DNA from: Takakia lepidozioides
Lineage: Eukaryota > Plantae > Bryophyta
Assembly (NCBI GenBank): GCA_030704615.1
Contig: CM060731.1
Coordinates: forward strand, 81,592,001-81,656,000
Length of the DNA: 64,000 nucleotides
Reading direction: 5' to 3'
Below are positions 4,783 to 64,000 of this stretch, one piece after another. The notes beneath the pieces are model-generated. The model was given only the letters and a program-made list of their open reading frames with translations. It was not told the DNA's origin and made no database searches. The first letter of the stretch is position 1, and each line of letters opens with the position of its first letter. Position numbers and translations under genes: made by a program.

Positions 4783-5382
4783 GTGCTCAGCTGCACCGTG
4801 GTGTCTTTGTGGTGGTTTGGAGTGACTTTGCAGGTACTGCCGATGTGGCAGCAGGAAAGTACCCAAAAACAGATAACAGAGATGAAGATAAGCTTTGGAA
4901 TGAACACTTTCCTGACATGCAATTCAGAGTTGGAACTACTGTAATAAGTAGGGTTTGGGGTGTTTACTGAAAGAACTTCACGCCGTGAGTGTCAGCTGCT
5001 AACAGCAAGGCTAAGGATGTATTCATGATTTGTACACAGGCAGGGATAGTTGAAGACCAGGGATAGAGGTCCAGATTCATCCAAGAGGGCCGGATTTCAC
5101 ACAAAATTACGTCTGATTCCTTGTGGATCAATAGCTACAAGAAATCTGTTTGGGTAGATGGTCAACTAGAAACAGCAGCGGCAGCAACGGTTGTAGAGCA
5201 AGGACTACTGATAAAGGTACCTTCTTCAATACATTTGTGGTGAGGGCACCTTCTTCTTCGACCTATTTCAGCCTGTTTTTCCCTCTCATCAGACTCATTA
5301 GCTCATTGGGATGATATGTGGTGGTTTGGAGTGACTTTGTAAGTTACTGCCGAGGTGGCAGCAGGAAAAAACAGATAACAGA
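4783..5382 (+). pseudogene. Fragments of the PDF-motif N-terminal region of the PDF-PPR gene family
   Basis: DEDKLWNEHF (4880-4910) and IHPRGPDF-HKITSDSLWINSYKKSVWVDGQLE (5076-5172); DNA shared with 26-29 kb and 48.4-48.9 kb. Confidence 0.7.
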
Positions 5383-55600: not shown

Positions 55601-58600
55601 CCACACATTGCAATGGAACTGCATTCTATAAACCCACAACCAAATGTTCATTTCTTGGGTAGAACATGGAGATTTTTCTAAAGGAGCTTAGTGCTCACCG
55701 CAAATGTGACCAATCAAGGTTGTCAAGAACATTAGAGTTCCTCCAAGCTTTGACGATGCTTGGCACCACTCCCAGCATTGTCACCCTTGCATCCTGGAGA
55801 GACAAAATGCATGCTAGATTATAGCTAAGCAATAACCGAGGAAGCTGATTTTACCATGCCTAGTGTATCACCTCTGACTGGGACTTAACATCAGAAAGCC
55901 CCCCGGCAATGAGGCTACCTGAATAAACGTAGCGAAACCACGTCCCAGTGGGGATCCATTATAAAGTGCAATACAAGCCCGGTTTAAGAGTGCTGCATAG
56001 ATGAGCCATGGGCCCATCATCCAGCCCAGGTTTGTGGGCCATGCAACCACATCCCGATTTCGGATGTCATGGTGTGCCCATGCATCAGCAGCAGCCTTGA
56101 TGGGAGTTGCGTGTGTCCATGGTATGGCTTTTGGTTCTCCTGTCATAGCATGCCAGGGCCAATTTAAGACACAAAACAAAGAGCTTCTGACTCTTTGTAC
56201 ATATTAATCAAGGCAGGACTCTATGCAGAGACTCAATGACAACCACTGCACCTACTTACTGAAAAACCAGCCATCGCCCTCCTAATTTCTGAGCAGAAAA
56301 TGTATTCAACTACATACTGCCCATTTACCCAACCTAGCTTTCAAAATGCAGTAAATGAAGTCCCAAGAGCTTCAGAATTAAGTTCAGAGGGTTTTGAGAC
56401 CAGTGCCTGTGGTGCCTGAGGAGAAGAGAATGTTCGATATGGCCTCCACAGGCACGGCCGCTGCTGTGTAATCATATGGTCTGCTGAACAATATTTGATA
56501 TCAACATACAGAGAAACTCAAAAGAGTATTCTACAACCCCACCTACCAGATTTTTGCTGGAAGACATGAGACATGAACATGCAGACGCATTGAGGAAACT
56601 GAAACTACTCCCATCTGCACCCAACCGACGGGGTTTTAAAAGTGCAGAGTGAGGGAAAAAACTACTGTTCACAACCGCTGATCAGATTCTTCTGGAGTAG
56701 ATGGTTGAGCAATACAGACAATTTTTAGTCCTCGGACTAAGCCCGGACAGTAATGTGGGACAAAGGGACACCACCTATGCAATCCAACAAATAATTTCTG
56801 AAACCTGGAAGACGATGCTCATACACGACAGAAGCAGAAGAGAATGGAAAGGGAGAAGAAAAATGTTTAGAACATCCACAGGGGCCCCAAGGACCCATGG
56901 AGTGGTTAGAATAACAAGAGAGAATGTACTCATAAGACGTTGTTTGCCGTAGCCTTGTGGCCATTGACCCTGCGCCCAGTTTGAGCGGAACACAAAGGGA
57001 CAATAACAAGAGAGAGAGGTACACAAAGCCAGGTTGGTAATCCTCTCGTGGTTTGTAACTCCTGTGTTAGACACATACCTGCTAAGTTGAGCAGCCATAG
57101 CTAGAAAGCTCTCCCAGGACATGTCGCCCTTGCGTAGAGATTTTCCCAAAATGATGCCAGTCCCAGATAGCACAATGGCCATTGGTGCATCGGCCTCTAC
57201 AACGCGACTGGCCCATAGCAATGGCTTTGTAAGTTATGCACATCAGGCTGTGGCCCCAGAATGAAAATCACAGAACAGTCTAATCAACTAGTGAGCTGAA
57301 TTTCCTTTTTGTTCAAGTTATGTTCTGGGGTAAGTGTTCTGTGATTTTATTGTCAGATGCACAATTCCCCCGAACACACTAGCTCCAAAAGAAATTGATC
57401 CTCAAAACAGCTTACCCTCATATGGTTCACACTCTGAAAGAAAGTGCTAGGACTTACGCATACAACGGAAGTGCCTTTTGTCCCCGCAGAATAACGTCCT
57501 GCAACACAACCAACAAACACCTTACAACTCTGATATATTGTGAATTGCAACAATCGAATCCAGTACTACTGTCTGCATTTAGCTTAGTGAAAGTGCACCA
57601 ATTCATATCAACCATGGCACAGAAAAATAATTCTAGATAGAATTGTCCTTACAATACATATCAGCATCCAGTCCAGTATGCGGACATATAGACCATCCTC
57701 AAAAGATCCATGATGAAGTCTGAGTTGCAACCATACAATTTCAACATACATTCCCATTTCTCGTTCTCAAGTGCATGTGCAAACCTGTGTGAAAATGGCC
57801 TTCGCTTTTGAGACTTGCAGACGGCTGGAAATCTCAGAGGGAGCGAAACTGTCCGCTATCGAAACCACGACACAGCCCGCAAGAACAATTGCCAGGTAGA
57901 TGATGACCGCATATACAGACATCGGCATATCAATGGCAATAGCATCTCCCTTACTAAACCCTGCCTGTTGCAACGAGTTTGCAACTTGACTGTGAAGTGA
58001 AAGGAAGCATGATAACTAAGTCAGTCATGTATCTTCAGAACTGTGTCTTCTCGTCTATCTAATTAGACTCCCTCCACTGCCTCTGTCCTGTCCAGAATAG
58101 TTCCCTTTTGTCAATCCATGTTTCATGAGAGAGACACATCAACTAATTAAAACAAAAACTGTCAAGGTTAGCGTTTAGACTGCTCATGGGTTTGGCACTG
58201 CTGTGTCGAATAAATGAGAGACCAAAGTGGTAACTTGGTCACAGACCTGGAATGACAGTCTAGAAGAAACGAAGACATAATTACTGACCCTTTACATAGT
58301 TTAAGCATGGAAATAATCTCCCCTATAGAGATCTGCCTGTAGAATTCCGAGGGTTGAGGGTCTAGGATGAACTGTGCAAAGCTGACTAAGTTTTGCTGCG
58401 TGAGATATCACTGACTTTTCAGTTCTTATATTGATTTGACAGCACAATATTTTGACTTTCCCCCTTCACAAATCCAGTAATCTAAGAGGCACCACAGGAT
58501 CCAGGGTGTACCACACCAATGCTCGAAGCGCAGCAACTGTCAAAGACTTTACTGGACCATCATCGTAGCCTTCGTCCCTCCACACAACTGCCACTTCCTC

Positions 58601-59884
58601 AGCTCTTTCCGGTGAATTGACGTGTAGACAGCATTCAGCCGAATTCATAACAGCCCCAGGCAGCCATCTCCCACCCGGACAAGGCTCCCCCCCCACCTCC
58701 ACCTCTTCAGCATTGAGAATGCACAATGGCCGAATGTGAAAGCAGAGATTGAGCTCCTCCAGAACAATACTCCAATAGATCTACAAAACGGTTCAATAAT
58801 AACTCAGTAGAGAATAGAGAATAGACCTATGTATCTAGACAAATACTACACTCCTGTAATGAGCTTCATTTGATCTCTAATTGGTGAGTGCCGGTCAAGT
58901 ACAATCTATATCAGAAGACTCAAACCAGCTGCGAAAATTCAGGGAAAAGGAAACATTCTTTAAAAAAGAAGAGCTGTTTGATGTTAATTGCACAGAAGAC
59001 TCTCTCTGGACATCAGGGATATGTGGAATTTTCCTACCTCTGGATTCTCCACTGAAAGTTGATGGAATCTATTGAAGCTTGCAACCGGATCCCTGTAGAT
59101 AGGTCCCAAAAGTTCTCGACCACGCTTCTCCATAATGTCACCTACATTTGTGAACTTTGCATCCTCCCTGATTCCACCATGTTGTGAGTTGCTTGAACAC
59201 AATGTAAAGTTGCTAGCTGCAGCATGCCTAATTGGTTCCAATTTGTTGCGTATGTATTGATCGGAGGGACAAAGGCAGAGACTGAGTCCTTAGTAAGAGA
59301 AATGCACAACATGTAAGCAGCACCAAACTGGATGTATGCAGGCGAACTTAATATGTGAGTGTCTATAAATTATACATTTTATTGAATATCCTTTCGGATG
59401 CACTGGGAAGAAGAATTGTATCTCCCTTCCTTCACTCTGGATTTAACTATTTCTTAGGATAAACCGGTCACTGAGACCAAATTCCACACCTATCACAATT
59501 GGTCTTTCTGTTGGCACAGTGGACGAACACTAGAGGGAGAACCGACAGACACATCGATGACTAATTCCGAACCACAATTACTTTTCGAGGTTGGAGAACT
59601 CACAAATCAGGTATCCAAGCAGGCGGTGGCCCGAATTCAGAAGAATTCCAGGTCTTGAAACAAGAGTAGTACAGCAGTTGATGTAGGGCGAACGGATAAT
59701 CAGGTTTTAACAATTCCTGGGAGACTCTTTTCCAGGAAGAATCCTGGCACGGACCAGTCTCCCTTAGAACTCCCACAAGCTCCTGATAGAACGCTTGAGC
59801 TTGCGGATACGGAAGTCCGGCCTCTTCAATGTCGAGCACTGTTAACTCCCATATAGTTTTGTTTGCAGATTTCAATGTCGACAT
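52613..59884 (-). CDS. AAE17: Acyl-activating enzyme 17/18-like (AMP-dependent acyl-CoA synthetase), about 14 exons
   Basis: [10 protein letters not shown]…GPPPAWIP; GGRWLPGA; [10 protein letters not shown]; [10 protein letters not shown]|EPKAIPWTH; [12 protein letters not shown]; FSSTGEAS…[10 protein letters not shown]; LRRHGD…[13 protein letters not shown]; [12 protein letters not shown]…KCSL*. AAE17 versus AAE18 orthology is not resolved. Confidence 0.92.
54767..54858 (+). pseudogene. Isolated exon 1 of N-carbamoylputrescine amidase (nitrilase family), antisense within an AAE intron
   Basis: [31 protein letters not shown] followed by a GT donor; resembles the plant CPA/NLP1 N-terminus. 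No further exons seen. Confidence 0.7.
56926..57000 (-). repeat. LINE 3'-end copy (truncated LINE or SINE tail) in an AAE intron
   Basis: TGTACTCATAAGACGTTGTTTGCCGTAGCCTTGTGGCCATTGACCC… near-identical to 5384-5450. Confidence 0.75.
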
Positions 59885-60530
59885 AATTCCTGGCCTTGTC
59901 ACCACTACTCCCTCACACCTCTCTCCACCTAAGTAAACATCGTCTCTTCAATACTCTTCCTTCCTGCTTAATCGTCCTCTCCCTCCCTCGCTCCCTCCGT
60001 CTTCAACTTAAGCGAGGATTCATACTTGCCACGTTGGTCTCAGACTTGAGTAGATGGATTAGAATCCAGATTAAGTAACTTTTTCAGAATAAGAAGGTAA
60101 GTGTCTCTGGCAGGATTCGAAAGCGGGACCACCCGAGATGCAGTACTAATGATGATGGACATTCATCCAGCACCCCTTTCCCGTTCCGTCCCGTTCAAGC
60201 TGCTAGAGAAGAGGATGAACAACCCGTTGACTGGAACTGGTTAAGACAGGTGAACGGAGACTACGTCACATCCTGCGTAAAATACTGGTACGAAGGCCAC
60301 GGGCTACATCCCGTCAGCCGGTCACAGTATGAAGATTGAGGACATAAAGGTGACCGGTTGTCGAAGGAAGGGCGATGGATGAGGCATGCGGATGTGGGGC
60401 CGGGCGGGGTAGGCCTTCATAGCCCTCTCGTCGGGTCCGGTCGCTTTGCCTCGGGAGCCGAGCAGCGAGGGCCGCTTGCTTCTGTTCCGAGAGTTTGTCT
60501 GTGGAGCTGAAGGCGGTATTGCGTTTGGCA
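59885..60530. promoter_or_regulatory. Putative bidirectional promoter / 5' UTR region
   Basis: About 0.65 kb between divergent start codons of AAE (-) and the PDF-PPR gene (+); CT-rich leader on the AAE side. Confidence 0.4.
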
Positions 60531-61351
60531 ATGCGCAAAGGACGTAGTCCCTTGCAAGTGGTGGCTATAGGGCATCCCAAAGCTTTAGGAATGCCAATGA
60601 GATCAGGTAATTTCTTTTCGGTTTGGCATCGTAGGATGTATCTGGCATGAGCCAATCTAATCCGGTCGACGAAGCAAGAAATAGGCAAGGGGTTATAGTT
60701 GGTATATTTGGCATGTAGGTCAACCCTGGAGCATGCAAGAGCACTGGCATGAGCTCTTTAAAGATCCTTCACAGTGGTGGGACTACAGCGTTGACAAGGT
60801 GAGCTTTCTTTCGAAGGATGTGTCATGAAATGTAGTTTGAGTGACTCTTGGCATGATATTGGTTTGTGAACTGGATTATAGCCCTAGGTGTTGAGCGAAG
60901 TTAGAATCTCGATTTGTCTGCAAAAACTACTCTTACTGTCAAAATGTAGGTTGTTCTTCCTAAGGTGGGCATGCAAGTAGGAAGCGGTCATTTCCCTATA
61001 ATTTACTTGGGAGGGTTTATGGTTGTGGCTTGATTAAACGATGGCTGCTCAGCTGCTGCCTGGTGGTTCTCACAGACCAATCGAAAATCTCCGGACTACC
61101 GACATAAGCAGTGCACGCAAGAGGTACTGAGGATTGAGGGTTGGTTCAATCCTCCTTGGGTGAAAGTAAAGCTAATTGCCATGGTACAACGTCGAGGACA
61201 GTGTAGTTATGGTGGAGTTATATCAAAGTTCGGTTCTGATTCCGGTTTGGATGGTGGAGCTCCCCCAAAACTTGAAGATGAAAGTGAGCATGACACGCAG
61301 ACCCTGATTAGAGAAGGGCAGCCTTGTCATGCTCAAGCTTGTTTAGCATCT
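60531..61351 (+). CDS. Putative 5' exons of the PPR gene encoding an OSB-type PDF motif
   Basis: Exons 60531-60606, 60719-60798 and 61076-61351 splice in phase: …MRSG QPWSMQEHWHELFKDPSQWWDYSVDK|TNRKSPDYRHKQCTQEVLRIEGWFNPPWVKVKL…ACLAS. The true start is uncertain. Confidence 0.65.
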
Positions 61352-61760
61352 GTAAGTTTGACATGTTTGTATGTTCCTCATGTGTTAAATGCAATAGTGC
61401 CCCCGGTGACTTGCATGGATGGTGTCGAAAGTTACACTGGCACTCCATAAAGAAAGCTGTCAAACTGTTGATGCTCTCTGAGTTTCTGGTACGAAGGGCA
61501 TCCATGGAGCATTGAACAGTGCTGGGCAGGAGCTCTGTAAAGCTCCTTCACAATGGTGCGATGTGTGATTCTTTTTCATATTGAATTTCGTCTTTGAAAC
61601 TTAGGGTGGTTTCTCAACTGAGACAAATGAGTTGGTATAGTTCTTCAAAGTAGATGACTCGAGTAGTTTTGTAACCATATGAAGATAGGCACTTGTACTA
61701 GAGTGTCTAGGAGCTTTAAGATATTTCATGTGAGTTTGAGCTTGACTAGAAATTTGGGCT

Positions 61761-64000
61761 ATGCAGGATGCAAGGTTGAATCAGGCACCAATGTTTGTTG
61801 GACATCAGATTGGCCGAAGGATTAACACCTCCACCATCACCACTGTTTTTGAAAGAGGATCACAAGAGGGAGTCAACAGAAACTCTCATGGTACTTGCGG
61901 GTATCTCAGGACGCTATCAAAGGCAGGACGTCTGAAAGAGGCACTGCACATATTGAATCAACAAGGTAGTCCAGCAGACTCCAATACTTATCTGTGTCTG
62001 TTGCAGGAGTGCATGAACTTGAAAGACCTATCAGAGGGAAAGCAGGTGCACGACCACATGAACCGATGCGGGTTTAAGCCAAACATATTTCTACTCAACA
62101 CCCTTGTCAACATGTATACCAAGTGCAGGAGTGTGGTGGATGCACGCCAAGTGTTTGATAAAATGCCTGAACGAGATATGTTTACATGGACTATAATGAT
62201 GGCAGGATATGCCAAGCATGGGCATGCTGAGGAGGCTTTAAAAATCTACGAGCAAATGCAATGGGAAGGAGTGGTACCTGACAGGGTCACGTTCACTTGT
62301 GTTCTAAATGCATGTGCCAGCTTAGGAGCCCTGGAAAAGGGCAAGCGGGTCCATGCTGACATCTACAAAAGTGGAATTATGTTGGATATCATCCTGCAGA
62401 ACACCCTTGTTGATATGTATGCAAAATGTGGGAGTGTGAAAGATGCATGCCAAGTTTTTGAAAACATGGCCCAAAAAGATGTGGTTTCTTGGAACATCAT
62501 GATTGCAGGATATGGCCAGCATGGGTGTAGTGAGGATGCTTTTAAGATCTATGAGAGGATGCAACAGAAAGGGGTAATGCCTGACAGGGTGACGTTCACT
62601 TGTGTTCTCAATGCGTGTGCCAACCTAGGCTCTCTGGAAAAGGGCAGGCAGGTTCATGCTAACCTAGTCAAAGCAAACATTGCATCATATATTAATTTGG
62701 AGAATTCTCTTGTAGACATGTATTCCAAATGCGGGAGCATGATTGGTGCACGTCAAGTGTTTGATAATATGGCAAAACGAGATGTTGTCTCATGGAGCAC
62801 AATGATTGCTGGATATGCTCAGCATGGGTTTGGTAAGGAGGCTTTACAGATTTATGACCAAATGCTAAAGGAGGGGGTGACGCCTGACAGGGTCACGTTC
62901 ACTTGCGTCCTTAATGCATGTGCCAGCCTAGGAGCCCTGGAAAAGGGCAAGCAAGTCCATGCTGACATCAACAAAAGCAGAATTGCACCAGATATTATTT
63001 TGGAGAATACCCTTGTGGACATGTATGCCAAATGCGGGGGCATGAAGGATGCCCTCCAAGTGTTTGACAGTATGGCTCAACAAGATGTGGTCTCATGGAG
63101 TGCCATGATTGCAGGATATGCACAGCATGGTTGTGGTAGTTTGGCTTTCAATATGTATGAAGAAATGCAAGAGAAAGGAGTGACACCCAACAGGGTCACT
63201 TTTATGGGCGTTCTAAATGCATGTGCCAGTCTAGGAGCCCTAGAAAAGGGCAGAGAAGTGCATGCTGCCATCATCAAAGCTGGGATCACATCATATATTA
63301 ATTTGGAGAACACCCTTGTTGACATGTATGCTAAGTGTGGGAGCATGAAAGATGCGCATGAAGTGTTCGATAATATGGCAAAGCGAGATGTGGTCTCGTG
63401 GAGCGCAATGATTGCAGGATATGCTCATCATGGGTGTGGTAGGGAAGCTTTCAAGGTCTACGAGCAAATGCACCAGGCAGGGGTGATGGCCAACGGAATA
63501 ACATTCATTTCCATTCTAAATGCATGTGCCAACTTAGGAGCCCTGGAAAAGGGCAAAGAGGTCCATGCTGACCTTATTAAAGCTGGAATATTATCATATA
63601 TTAATTTGGAGAATGCCCTTGTCGCAATGTATGTCAAATGTGGGAGCATGAAGGATGCACGGCAAGTGTTCAACAATATGGCAGAACGAAATGTAATCTC
63701 ATGGAGCGCAATGATCACAGGATGTTCCCAGCATGGGTGGGGTTGGGAGGCCTTGCAAGTGTTTGAACAAATGCAACAGGAGGGACTGAAGCCAAACAGT
63801 ATCACCTTTACATCTCTACTCTCGGCTTGTAGTCATGTGGGCCTGGTGGATGAAGGCCGTCATTACTTTGAGTCAATGAGTCGAGATCATGGGCTCCCTC
63901 CTACATTAGAACATTTTGGCTGCATGGTAGACCTCCTTGGCCGTGCAGGGCGATTGGAAGAGGCAGAGGATTTCATCAACAAAATGCCAATGAAACCAGA
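61761..64000 (+). CDS. PLS-class pentatricopeptide repeat protein (probable organellar RNA-editing factor); 3' end outside window
   Basis: Uninterrupted frame, missed by the ORF track because there is no stop: repeated P-L-S triplets (NTLVDMYAKCGS…DVVSWSAMIAGYAQHG…PDRVTFTCVLNACASLGALEKG) ending TFTSLLSACSHVGLVDEG…HFGCMVDLLGRAGRLEEAEDFINKMPMKP. Confidence 0.95.
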   Translation, partial: MQDARLNQAPMFVGHQIGRRINTSTITTVFERGSQEGVNRNSHGTCGYLRTLSKAGRLKEALHILNQQGSPADSNTYLCLLQECMNLKDLSEGKQVHDHMNRCGFKPNIFLLNTLVNMYTKCRSVVDARQVFDKMPERDMFTWTIMMAGYAKHGHAEEALKIYEQMQWEGVVPDRVTFTCVLNACASLGALEKGKRVHADIYKSGIMLDIILQNTLVDMYAKCGSVKDACQVFENMAQKDVVSWNIMIAGYGQHGCSEDAFKIYERMQQKGVMPDRVTFTCVLNACANLGSLEKGRQVHANLVKANIASYINLENSLVDMYSKCGSMIGARQVFDNMAKRDVVSWSTMIAGYAQHGFGKEALQIYDQMLKEGVTPDRVTFTCVLNACASLGALEKGKQVHADINKSRIAPDIILENTLVDMYAKCGGMKDALQVFDSMAQQDVVSWSAMIAGYAQHGCGSLAFNMYEEMQEKGVTPNRVTFMGVLNACASLGALEKGREVHAAIIKAGITSYINLENTLVDMYAKCGSMKDAHEVFDNMAKRDVVSWSAMIAGYAHHGCGREAFKVYEQMHQAGVMANGITFISILNACANLGALEKGKEVHADLIKAGILSYINLENALVAMYVKCGSMKDARQVFNNMAERNVISWSAMITGCSQHGWGWEALQVFEQMQQEGLKPNSITFTSLLSACSHVGLVDEGRHYFESMSRDHGLPPTLEHFGCMVDLLGRAGRLEEAEDFINKMPMKP

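Follow-up and report, generated by a model that had tools for sequence, protein, structure and literature searches.

The window analysed here, a 64,000-nucleotide stretch of the Takakia lepidozioides genome (GCA_030704615.1, contig CM060731.1, positions 81,592,001 to 81,656,000), holds at its right end a gene in which short exons encoding the PDF motif of OSB (organellar ssDNA-binding) proteins precede a long exon encoding a PLS-class PPR array (Table 1). Exons 1 to 4 join in a frame with no stops across three GT..AG introns in phases 1, 0 and 0, and exon 4 consists of 744 open PLS-PPR codons without a stop or frameshift; the exon and intron coordinates and the phase compatibility given in the preliminary description thus agree with the sequence. 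The last P of the six L-S-P triplets was taken as P2, giving a P2-L2-S2 ending, and the window ends at the end of S2, just before the expected E1, so any E1, E2 and DYW domains would lie beyond the window. The PPR code residues at position 5 and the last position are canonical (ND, TD, SD, SN) and predict a target string of about nUGnUUnUGnUAnUAnYA. An exon-by-exon Pfam search returned PPR matches in exon 4 and no matches in exons 1-3, and no exon matched an SSB family, the sign of an SSB-like OB-fold. The exon 1 product is basic, lacks D and E, and may encode a short organellar presequence, with only about 34 aa ahead of the PDF.

Table 1. Features of the PDF-PPR locus and its neighbours, in window positions.
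Feature	Position	Strand	Description
Exon 1	60531..60606	+	25 codons from ATG 60531; ends in a phase-1 intron
Intron 1	60607..60718	+	GT..AG, phase 1; just before the PDF; position conserved in the family
Exon 2	60719..60798	+	80 nt; encodes the first half of PDF1 (W..LF.DPSQWWD), with S in place of R21
Intron 2	60799..61075	+	GT..AG, phase 0, within the PDF; position common to OSB and fusion genes
Exon 3, form of the preliminary description	61076..61351	+	Second half of PDF1 (F32Y, W42R) and a linker of about 55 aa
Extended part of exon 3	61352..61555	+	Retained in an RNA contig; holds the donor at 61352, an in-frame TAA (61448-61450) and an ATG (61553-61555)
First-half exon of PDF2 relic	about 61497..61561	+	AG acceptor kept at 61495-96; 1-nt insertion; truncated
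Intron 3, RNA-supported	61556..61766	+	GT..AG, 211 nt
Exon 4	61767..64000	+	Lead-in of about 70 aa, six L-S-P triplets, L2-S2; frame open to the window end
AMP-binding gene	about 56000-59972	-	Acyl-activating enzyme-like
Relic cluster	26040-29330	-	Decayed PDF half-exons and PLS repeats with stops
Isolated relic	48357-48830	-	PDF half-exon
Isolated relic	about 4870-5230	+	PDF half-exon

Each exon was tested separately against profiles and databases, with an OSB-only HMM based on 72 OB-fold OSB proteins (175 PDF copies in all) and with 2000 shuffles per exon as controls. Exon 2 scored 22.1 bits over model positions 3-24 (best shuffle 10.9) and exon 3 scored 21.2 bits over positions 26-54 (best shuffle 6.9), confirming at the profile level the earlier assignment to the OSB PDF; as judged by these scores, the two exons are the two halves of a real OSB-type motif. 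Chance resemblance was ruled out by the shuffles together with the introns shared with relatives. This first motif, PDF1, carries three substitutions at near-invariant positions (R21S, F32Y and W42R; conserved in the OSB and fusion families at 96-99%, 98-100% and 95%, respectively) and by that comparison is degenerate. Although paralogues add high depth on exons 2-3, no variants of at least 10% are listed there, and an expressed subfamily may have these substitutions in common. A second motif, PDF2, is left as a relic, its DNA aligning to exon 2 with a score of 79 (shuffle maximum 31) and its translation scoring 7.7 bits against the OSB-only HMM. The second half of PDF2 is absent before the repeats of this gene, and a decayed paralogue at 27.6 kb keeps one; from the relic and the retained half we infer an ancestor with two PDFs that lost the one adjoining the repeats. 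In the gene model first proposed, 126 aa separate PDF1 from the first triplet, which is outside the range of the family described below.

Two public sequencing runs cover the region, both as contigs whose RNA nature is only guessed. Run X1 acts as RNA: it has a spliced contig, its depth falls to zero in intron 2 and in the stretch separating the divergent genes, and near the gene start bins 60406-60707 are covered whereas bins 60104-60405 are empty. The run contigs show transcript along the gene. One X1 contig (record 2; 603 nt, depth 10.3, zero mismatches) extends from 61137 through 61352 to 61555 and is there joined to 61767, the sole junction into the PPR exon among the best 15 of 50 joints listed; the 61351/61767 junction was unseen among these same best 15 of 50, from an assembly into contigs that drops minor paths. 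DNA contamination was rejected as the source of the read-through from 61352 to 61555, the contig being spliced at GT..AG and the depth of intron 2 and the intergenic region being zero. In the form using the 61556 donor, the PDF frame stops at TAA 61448-50 after 176 residues, 105 nt upstream of the junction, and the intact PPR frame starts from a new ATG at 61553-55. The genome sequence would allow a fused protein from this locus; the RNA seen does not support one, joining 61555 to 61767 with the TAA lying after the PDF. Of the three introns first proposed, the first two stand, their positions and phases matching those of relatives and intron 2 having zero depth in X1, whereas for the third (61352-61766) the junction was unseen among the joints listed and the contig runs unbroken across 61352.

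By depth arithmetic, other contigs, probably from paralogues or else an isoform, seem to end near 61335-61351; one contig lacks a base at 61335. Summed RNA contig depth is about 110 on 60719-60798 and about 450 on 61076-61160, versus about 10-25 for the gene itself, an excess on the PDF exons that implies many expressed near-identical paralogues. Elsewhere in the window, a PDF second half at 27.6 kb runs straight into a PPR start homologous to 61827-62059, and together with the clustered and isolated relics of Table 1 it gives the impression of a genome that seems littered with PDF-PPR pseudogenes. The AMP-binding gene, expressed in both runs, is divergent from the PDF-PPR gene and lies head to head with it across about 550 bp.

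Database searches recovered 167 proteins with both PDF and PPR from a clubmoss, mosses, a liverwort and a fern, in keeping with the earlier guess that related hypothetical proteins exist in seed-free plant annotations. None of the 167 has an OB-fold and 62 have a DYW-type C-terminus; the PDF, in one to three copies, stands ahead of the repeats in all 136 fusions that were classified, and the gap from the last PDF to the first triplet has a median of 51 and a maximum of 87 aa. Seven PDF positions (W, P, D, R, P, D, W) never vary in 64 fusions from liverworts, mosses, lycophytes and ferns, with conservation equal to that of any PPR column, and the fusions keep the same invariant residues as OSB PDFs. 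A profile of the fusion PDFs in turn recovers SSB-domain OSB proteins, among them a named Lupinus OSB3-like protein. An intron-free Logan contig from another organism (SRR4210093) has three PDFs and PPR in one frame. A search with a PDF region brought up PDF-PPR proteins of Diphasiastrum, several Sphagnum species, Ceratodon, Calypogeia and Adiantum. The PPR frame of the Takakia gene is closest to Diphasiastrum and Ginkgo proteins, many of the Diphasiastrum ones being PDF-fronted. Many close PPR relatives are without a PDF (the Ginkgo matches and some from Diphasiastrum), and none was found in 14 seed-plant PPR matches (13 Ginkgo, 1 Cardamine), a small sample. No Physcomitrium protein came up when the PDF region of Ceratodon served as query, in a word-index search that can miss members. 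Pfam family PF26713, which occurs on many of the matches, was rejected as the PDF because it is absent from the PDF-bearing protein P0027 and present on the PDF-less P0001. On this sequence evidence PDF plus PLS-PPR is a real family, an ancient domain combination that is a variant of PLS-PPR editing factors and not of OSB. No description of a PDF-PPR fusion was found in a search of full-text literature to which the original OSB paper (PMC1785405) was external, and the family is apparently undescribed. The Takakia gene has the family layout of a phase-1 intron before the PDF and a phase-0 intron inside it, upstream of a PLS array. It departs from the family in spacing: intact PDFs lie some 40-90 aa from the first PLS triplet, against 126 aa here, where PDF2 is destroyed. 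Takakia lepidozioides has 2,016 PPRs (PMC13386178).

The PDF introns are alike in a Diphasiastrum fusion, a Calypogeia fusion, a Liquidambar OSB gene and the Takakia gene, with a phase-1 intron just before the motif and a phase-0 intron after WWD....K, and the first-half exon is 80 nt in both Takakia and Calypogeia. Introns 1 and 2 are supported by their occurrence at the same places and in the same phases in fusion and OSB genes, and the shared pattern points to common ancestry of the PDF exon pair with OSB genes; an early PLS-PPR gene would have taken up the pair together with its introns. In a quick tree of the motif (63 columns), a branch with 96% support sets 30 of 34 fusion PDFs apart; this suggests a single origin of the fusion PDFs, though four label changes are needed and sampling is uneven. 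Two proteins (P0157 and P0158, from Kingdonia and a JGI sample) contain 10-13 tandem PDF motifs, far exceeding the one to three described for OSBs.

AlphaFold modelled the PDF alone with a pLDDT of 94 as a helix, three short strands and a helix, and the Calypogeia PDF with its first repeats with a pLDDT of 93 and a pTM of 0.83, about 10 residues separating the PDF from the first PPR helix. A PDB fold search with the PDF model gave nothing meaningful (best Z 3.2), and in the ESM Atlas the model matches PPR and SSB-family clusters (TM 0.80-0.86 for the SSB-family cluster). Further Atlas fold matches are two clusters of hypothetical tailed-phage proteins (187 and 199 aa; TM 0.63-0.70) and Rad52/Rad22-family proteins (TM 0.41-0.47). 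The motif is called green-plant specific in reviews, and PHROGs gave no significant sequence match to it; on the fold models, a phage single-strand-annealing origin of the PDF may be taken as a lead.

We favor, at a probability of roughly one half, a joint reading in which the PDF is an accessory RNA-side module in the family and is decaying and uncoupled in the Takakia copy. At the level of the family, the architecture, the introns held in common, the constant spacing, the conserved residues and the confident fold model are firm; the function of the PDF is inferred, and is most likely that of an accessory RNA-gripping or stabilizing cap, not a DNA tether. The locus would descend from a two-PDF member of the seedless-plant PLS-PPR organellar editing factors of E/DYW type, in whose intact members the last PDF directly adjoins the N-terminal end of the array, the part that binds the 5' end of the target RNA. 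There it would most likely act as a built-in, sequence-independent grip or stabilizing cap that aids loading of the array on structured single-stranded RNA, a job that falls to separate helper proteins in seed plants, to which the MORF helpers are restricted (PMC13386178). On the bound RNA the N-terminus of a PPR array faces the 5' end and S2 sits four bases before the edited C (PMC10482289), so the PDF would be found at the extreme 5' end, remote from the deaminase; at the array end farthest from E/DYW, an RNA-side role fits at least as well as a DNA tether. The Takakia copy itself appears to be losing the module: of its two motifs one (PDF2) is destroyed and the other (PDF1) degenerate, and in the transcript seen a stop follows PDF1. 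Because of these lesions, and because the PPR frame is intact behind ATG 61553, this copy probably makes an editing-type PPR factor that lacks a working PDF altogether or in part.

Several observations count against parts of this reading. Full-length OSBs prefer ssDNA over RNA (PMC4166229), which speaks against a cap. The uncoupled isoform is represented by one contig at depth 10 among the best 15 of 50 joints listed, the donor at 61352 is a strong GTAAGT, and other contigs seem to end close to it. The PDF1 substitutions may belong to an expressed subfamily rather than mark damage, no variants of at least 10% being listed, and the seed-plant absence of the PDF is drawn from just the 14 PPR matches.

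The rather improbable alternative, put forward in the preliminary description, is that the locus encodes a fused PDF-PLS(-E/DYW) protein via the 61352 donor and that the PDF tethers the editing factor to nucleoid ssDNA (transcription bubbles, R-loops) for co-transcriptional editing. All three introns are phase-compatible, the 61352 donor is strong, and the apparent end of other contigs near 61350, by arithmetic only, would suit its use; the AtOSB1 PDF is sufficient for ssDNA binding (PMC6963530), the same ssDNA preference of OSBs (PMC4166229) applies, and the family retains the invariant residues of the OSB PDF. However, the contig at the locus is continuous across 61352 and splices at 61556, its PDF lacks R21, F32 and W42, its 126-aa spacing is beyond the family range, and in the family the PDF is joined to the PPR N-terminus by a link that is short and constant in length, as would be expected of a cap more than of a flexible tether.

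Unlikely, too, is that the locus in its entirety is a decaying duplicate, transcribed but making little PPR protein, its intact PPR frame reflecting a recent loss of selection. An mRNA with a stop upstream of a splice junction is by general rule a target of decay. In what would be the main mRNA here the premature stop lies 105 nt upstream of the junction, reinitiation is unlikely because of the 176-aa upstream frame with several ATGs, and several more PDF-PPR relics lie decayed elsewhere in the window. Against this stand 744 codons free of stops and frameshifts while the 5' part has several lesions, and a transcript along the gene; the PPR triplets compared among themselves give dN/dS of 0.12-0.32, which reflects past selection only and does not decide the matter.

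A broader and doubtful proposal is that a large class of seedless-plant organellar editing factors uses the PDF to bind nucleoid ssDNA, coupling C-to-U editing to transcription or putting the DYW deaminase beside DNA, and that the Takakia gene is still fused via 61352, with the 61556 donor as a switch removing the module. That the PDF exons are neutral passengers in a long targeting leader, functionless in every family member, is very improbable: many close PPR relatives (Ginkgo, some Diphasiastrum) have no PDF, and PDF copies range from one to three and readily decay in the genome, but the seven invariant residues across 64 fusions and the fixed spacing to the repeats largely refute it.

The importance of the PDF-PPR architecture lies mostly with the family, the Takakia copy being a poor representative that shows loss of the module, and better copies exist. 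Moss PPR-DYW editors are single polypeptides and seedless plants are without MORF helpers; a conserved, unannotated nucleic-acid-binding module such as the PDF, present on much of their editing-type PPR complement, would make a candidate helper in cis, would link organellar DNA maintenance with RNA editing, and could serve as a part for engineered PPR editors. PPR-SMR proteins are another PPR fusion with an accessory nucleic-acid or helper domain. RRM-PPR, MORF-PPR and OZ-PPR proteins likewise carry an accessory module in cis on a PPR array (PMC13386178), and the same 2026 kingdom-wide survey of PPR fusions has no matches for OSB or PDF. PLS-class editing factors with E, E+ or DYW extensions, such as Physcomitrium PPR56 (PMC10482289), have, like the Takakia gene, P-L-S triplets closing in P2-L2-S2, and a DYW-type C-terminus is found on 62 of the 167 fusions too; the fusions differ in their N-terminal PDF module. 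OSB proteins (Arabidopsis OSB1-4) share the 50-aa PDF motif and the intron phases of the fusions; in OSBs the PDF is C-terminal and an SSB-like OB-fold is present at the N-terminus or centrally, whereas in the fusions it is N-terminal, joined to an RNA-reading array, with no OB-fold. Hypothetical proteins of Diphasiastrum (O6H91_05G047200 and others), Sphagnum, Ceratodon, Calypogeia and Adiantum share the domain order, PDF, two-PDF layout and introns of the Takakia gene, whose PDF second half is 60% identical to that of Diphasiastrum O6H91_01G051500. These relatives are annotated as hypothetical or PPR only, the Pfam copy searched having no PDF model and current annotation thus missing the module, and their PDFs are intact and adjoin the repeats, whereas those of the Takakia gene are degenerate and uncoupled in the RNA seen. 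Compared with other PPR fusions, the PDF-PPR proteins draw their module from the organellar DNA-maintenance machinery and occur as very many lycophyte and moss paralogues, not as a few genes.
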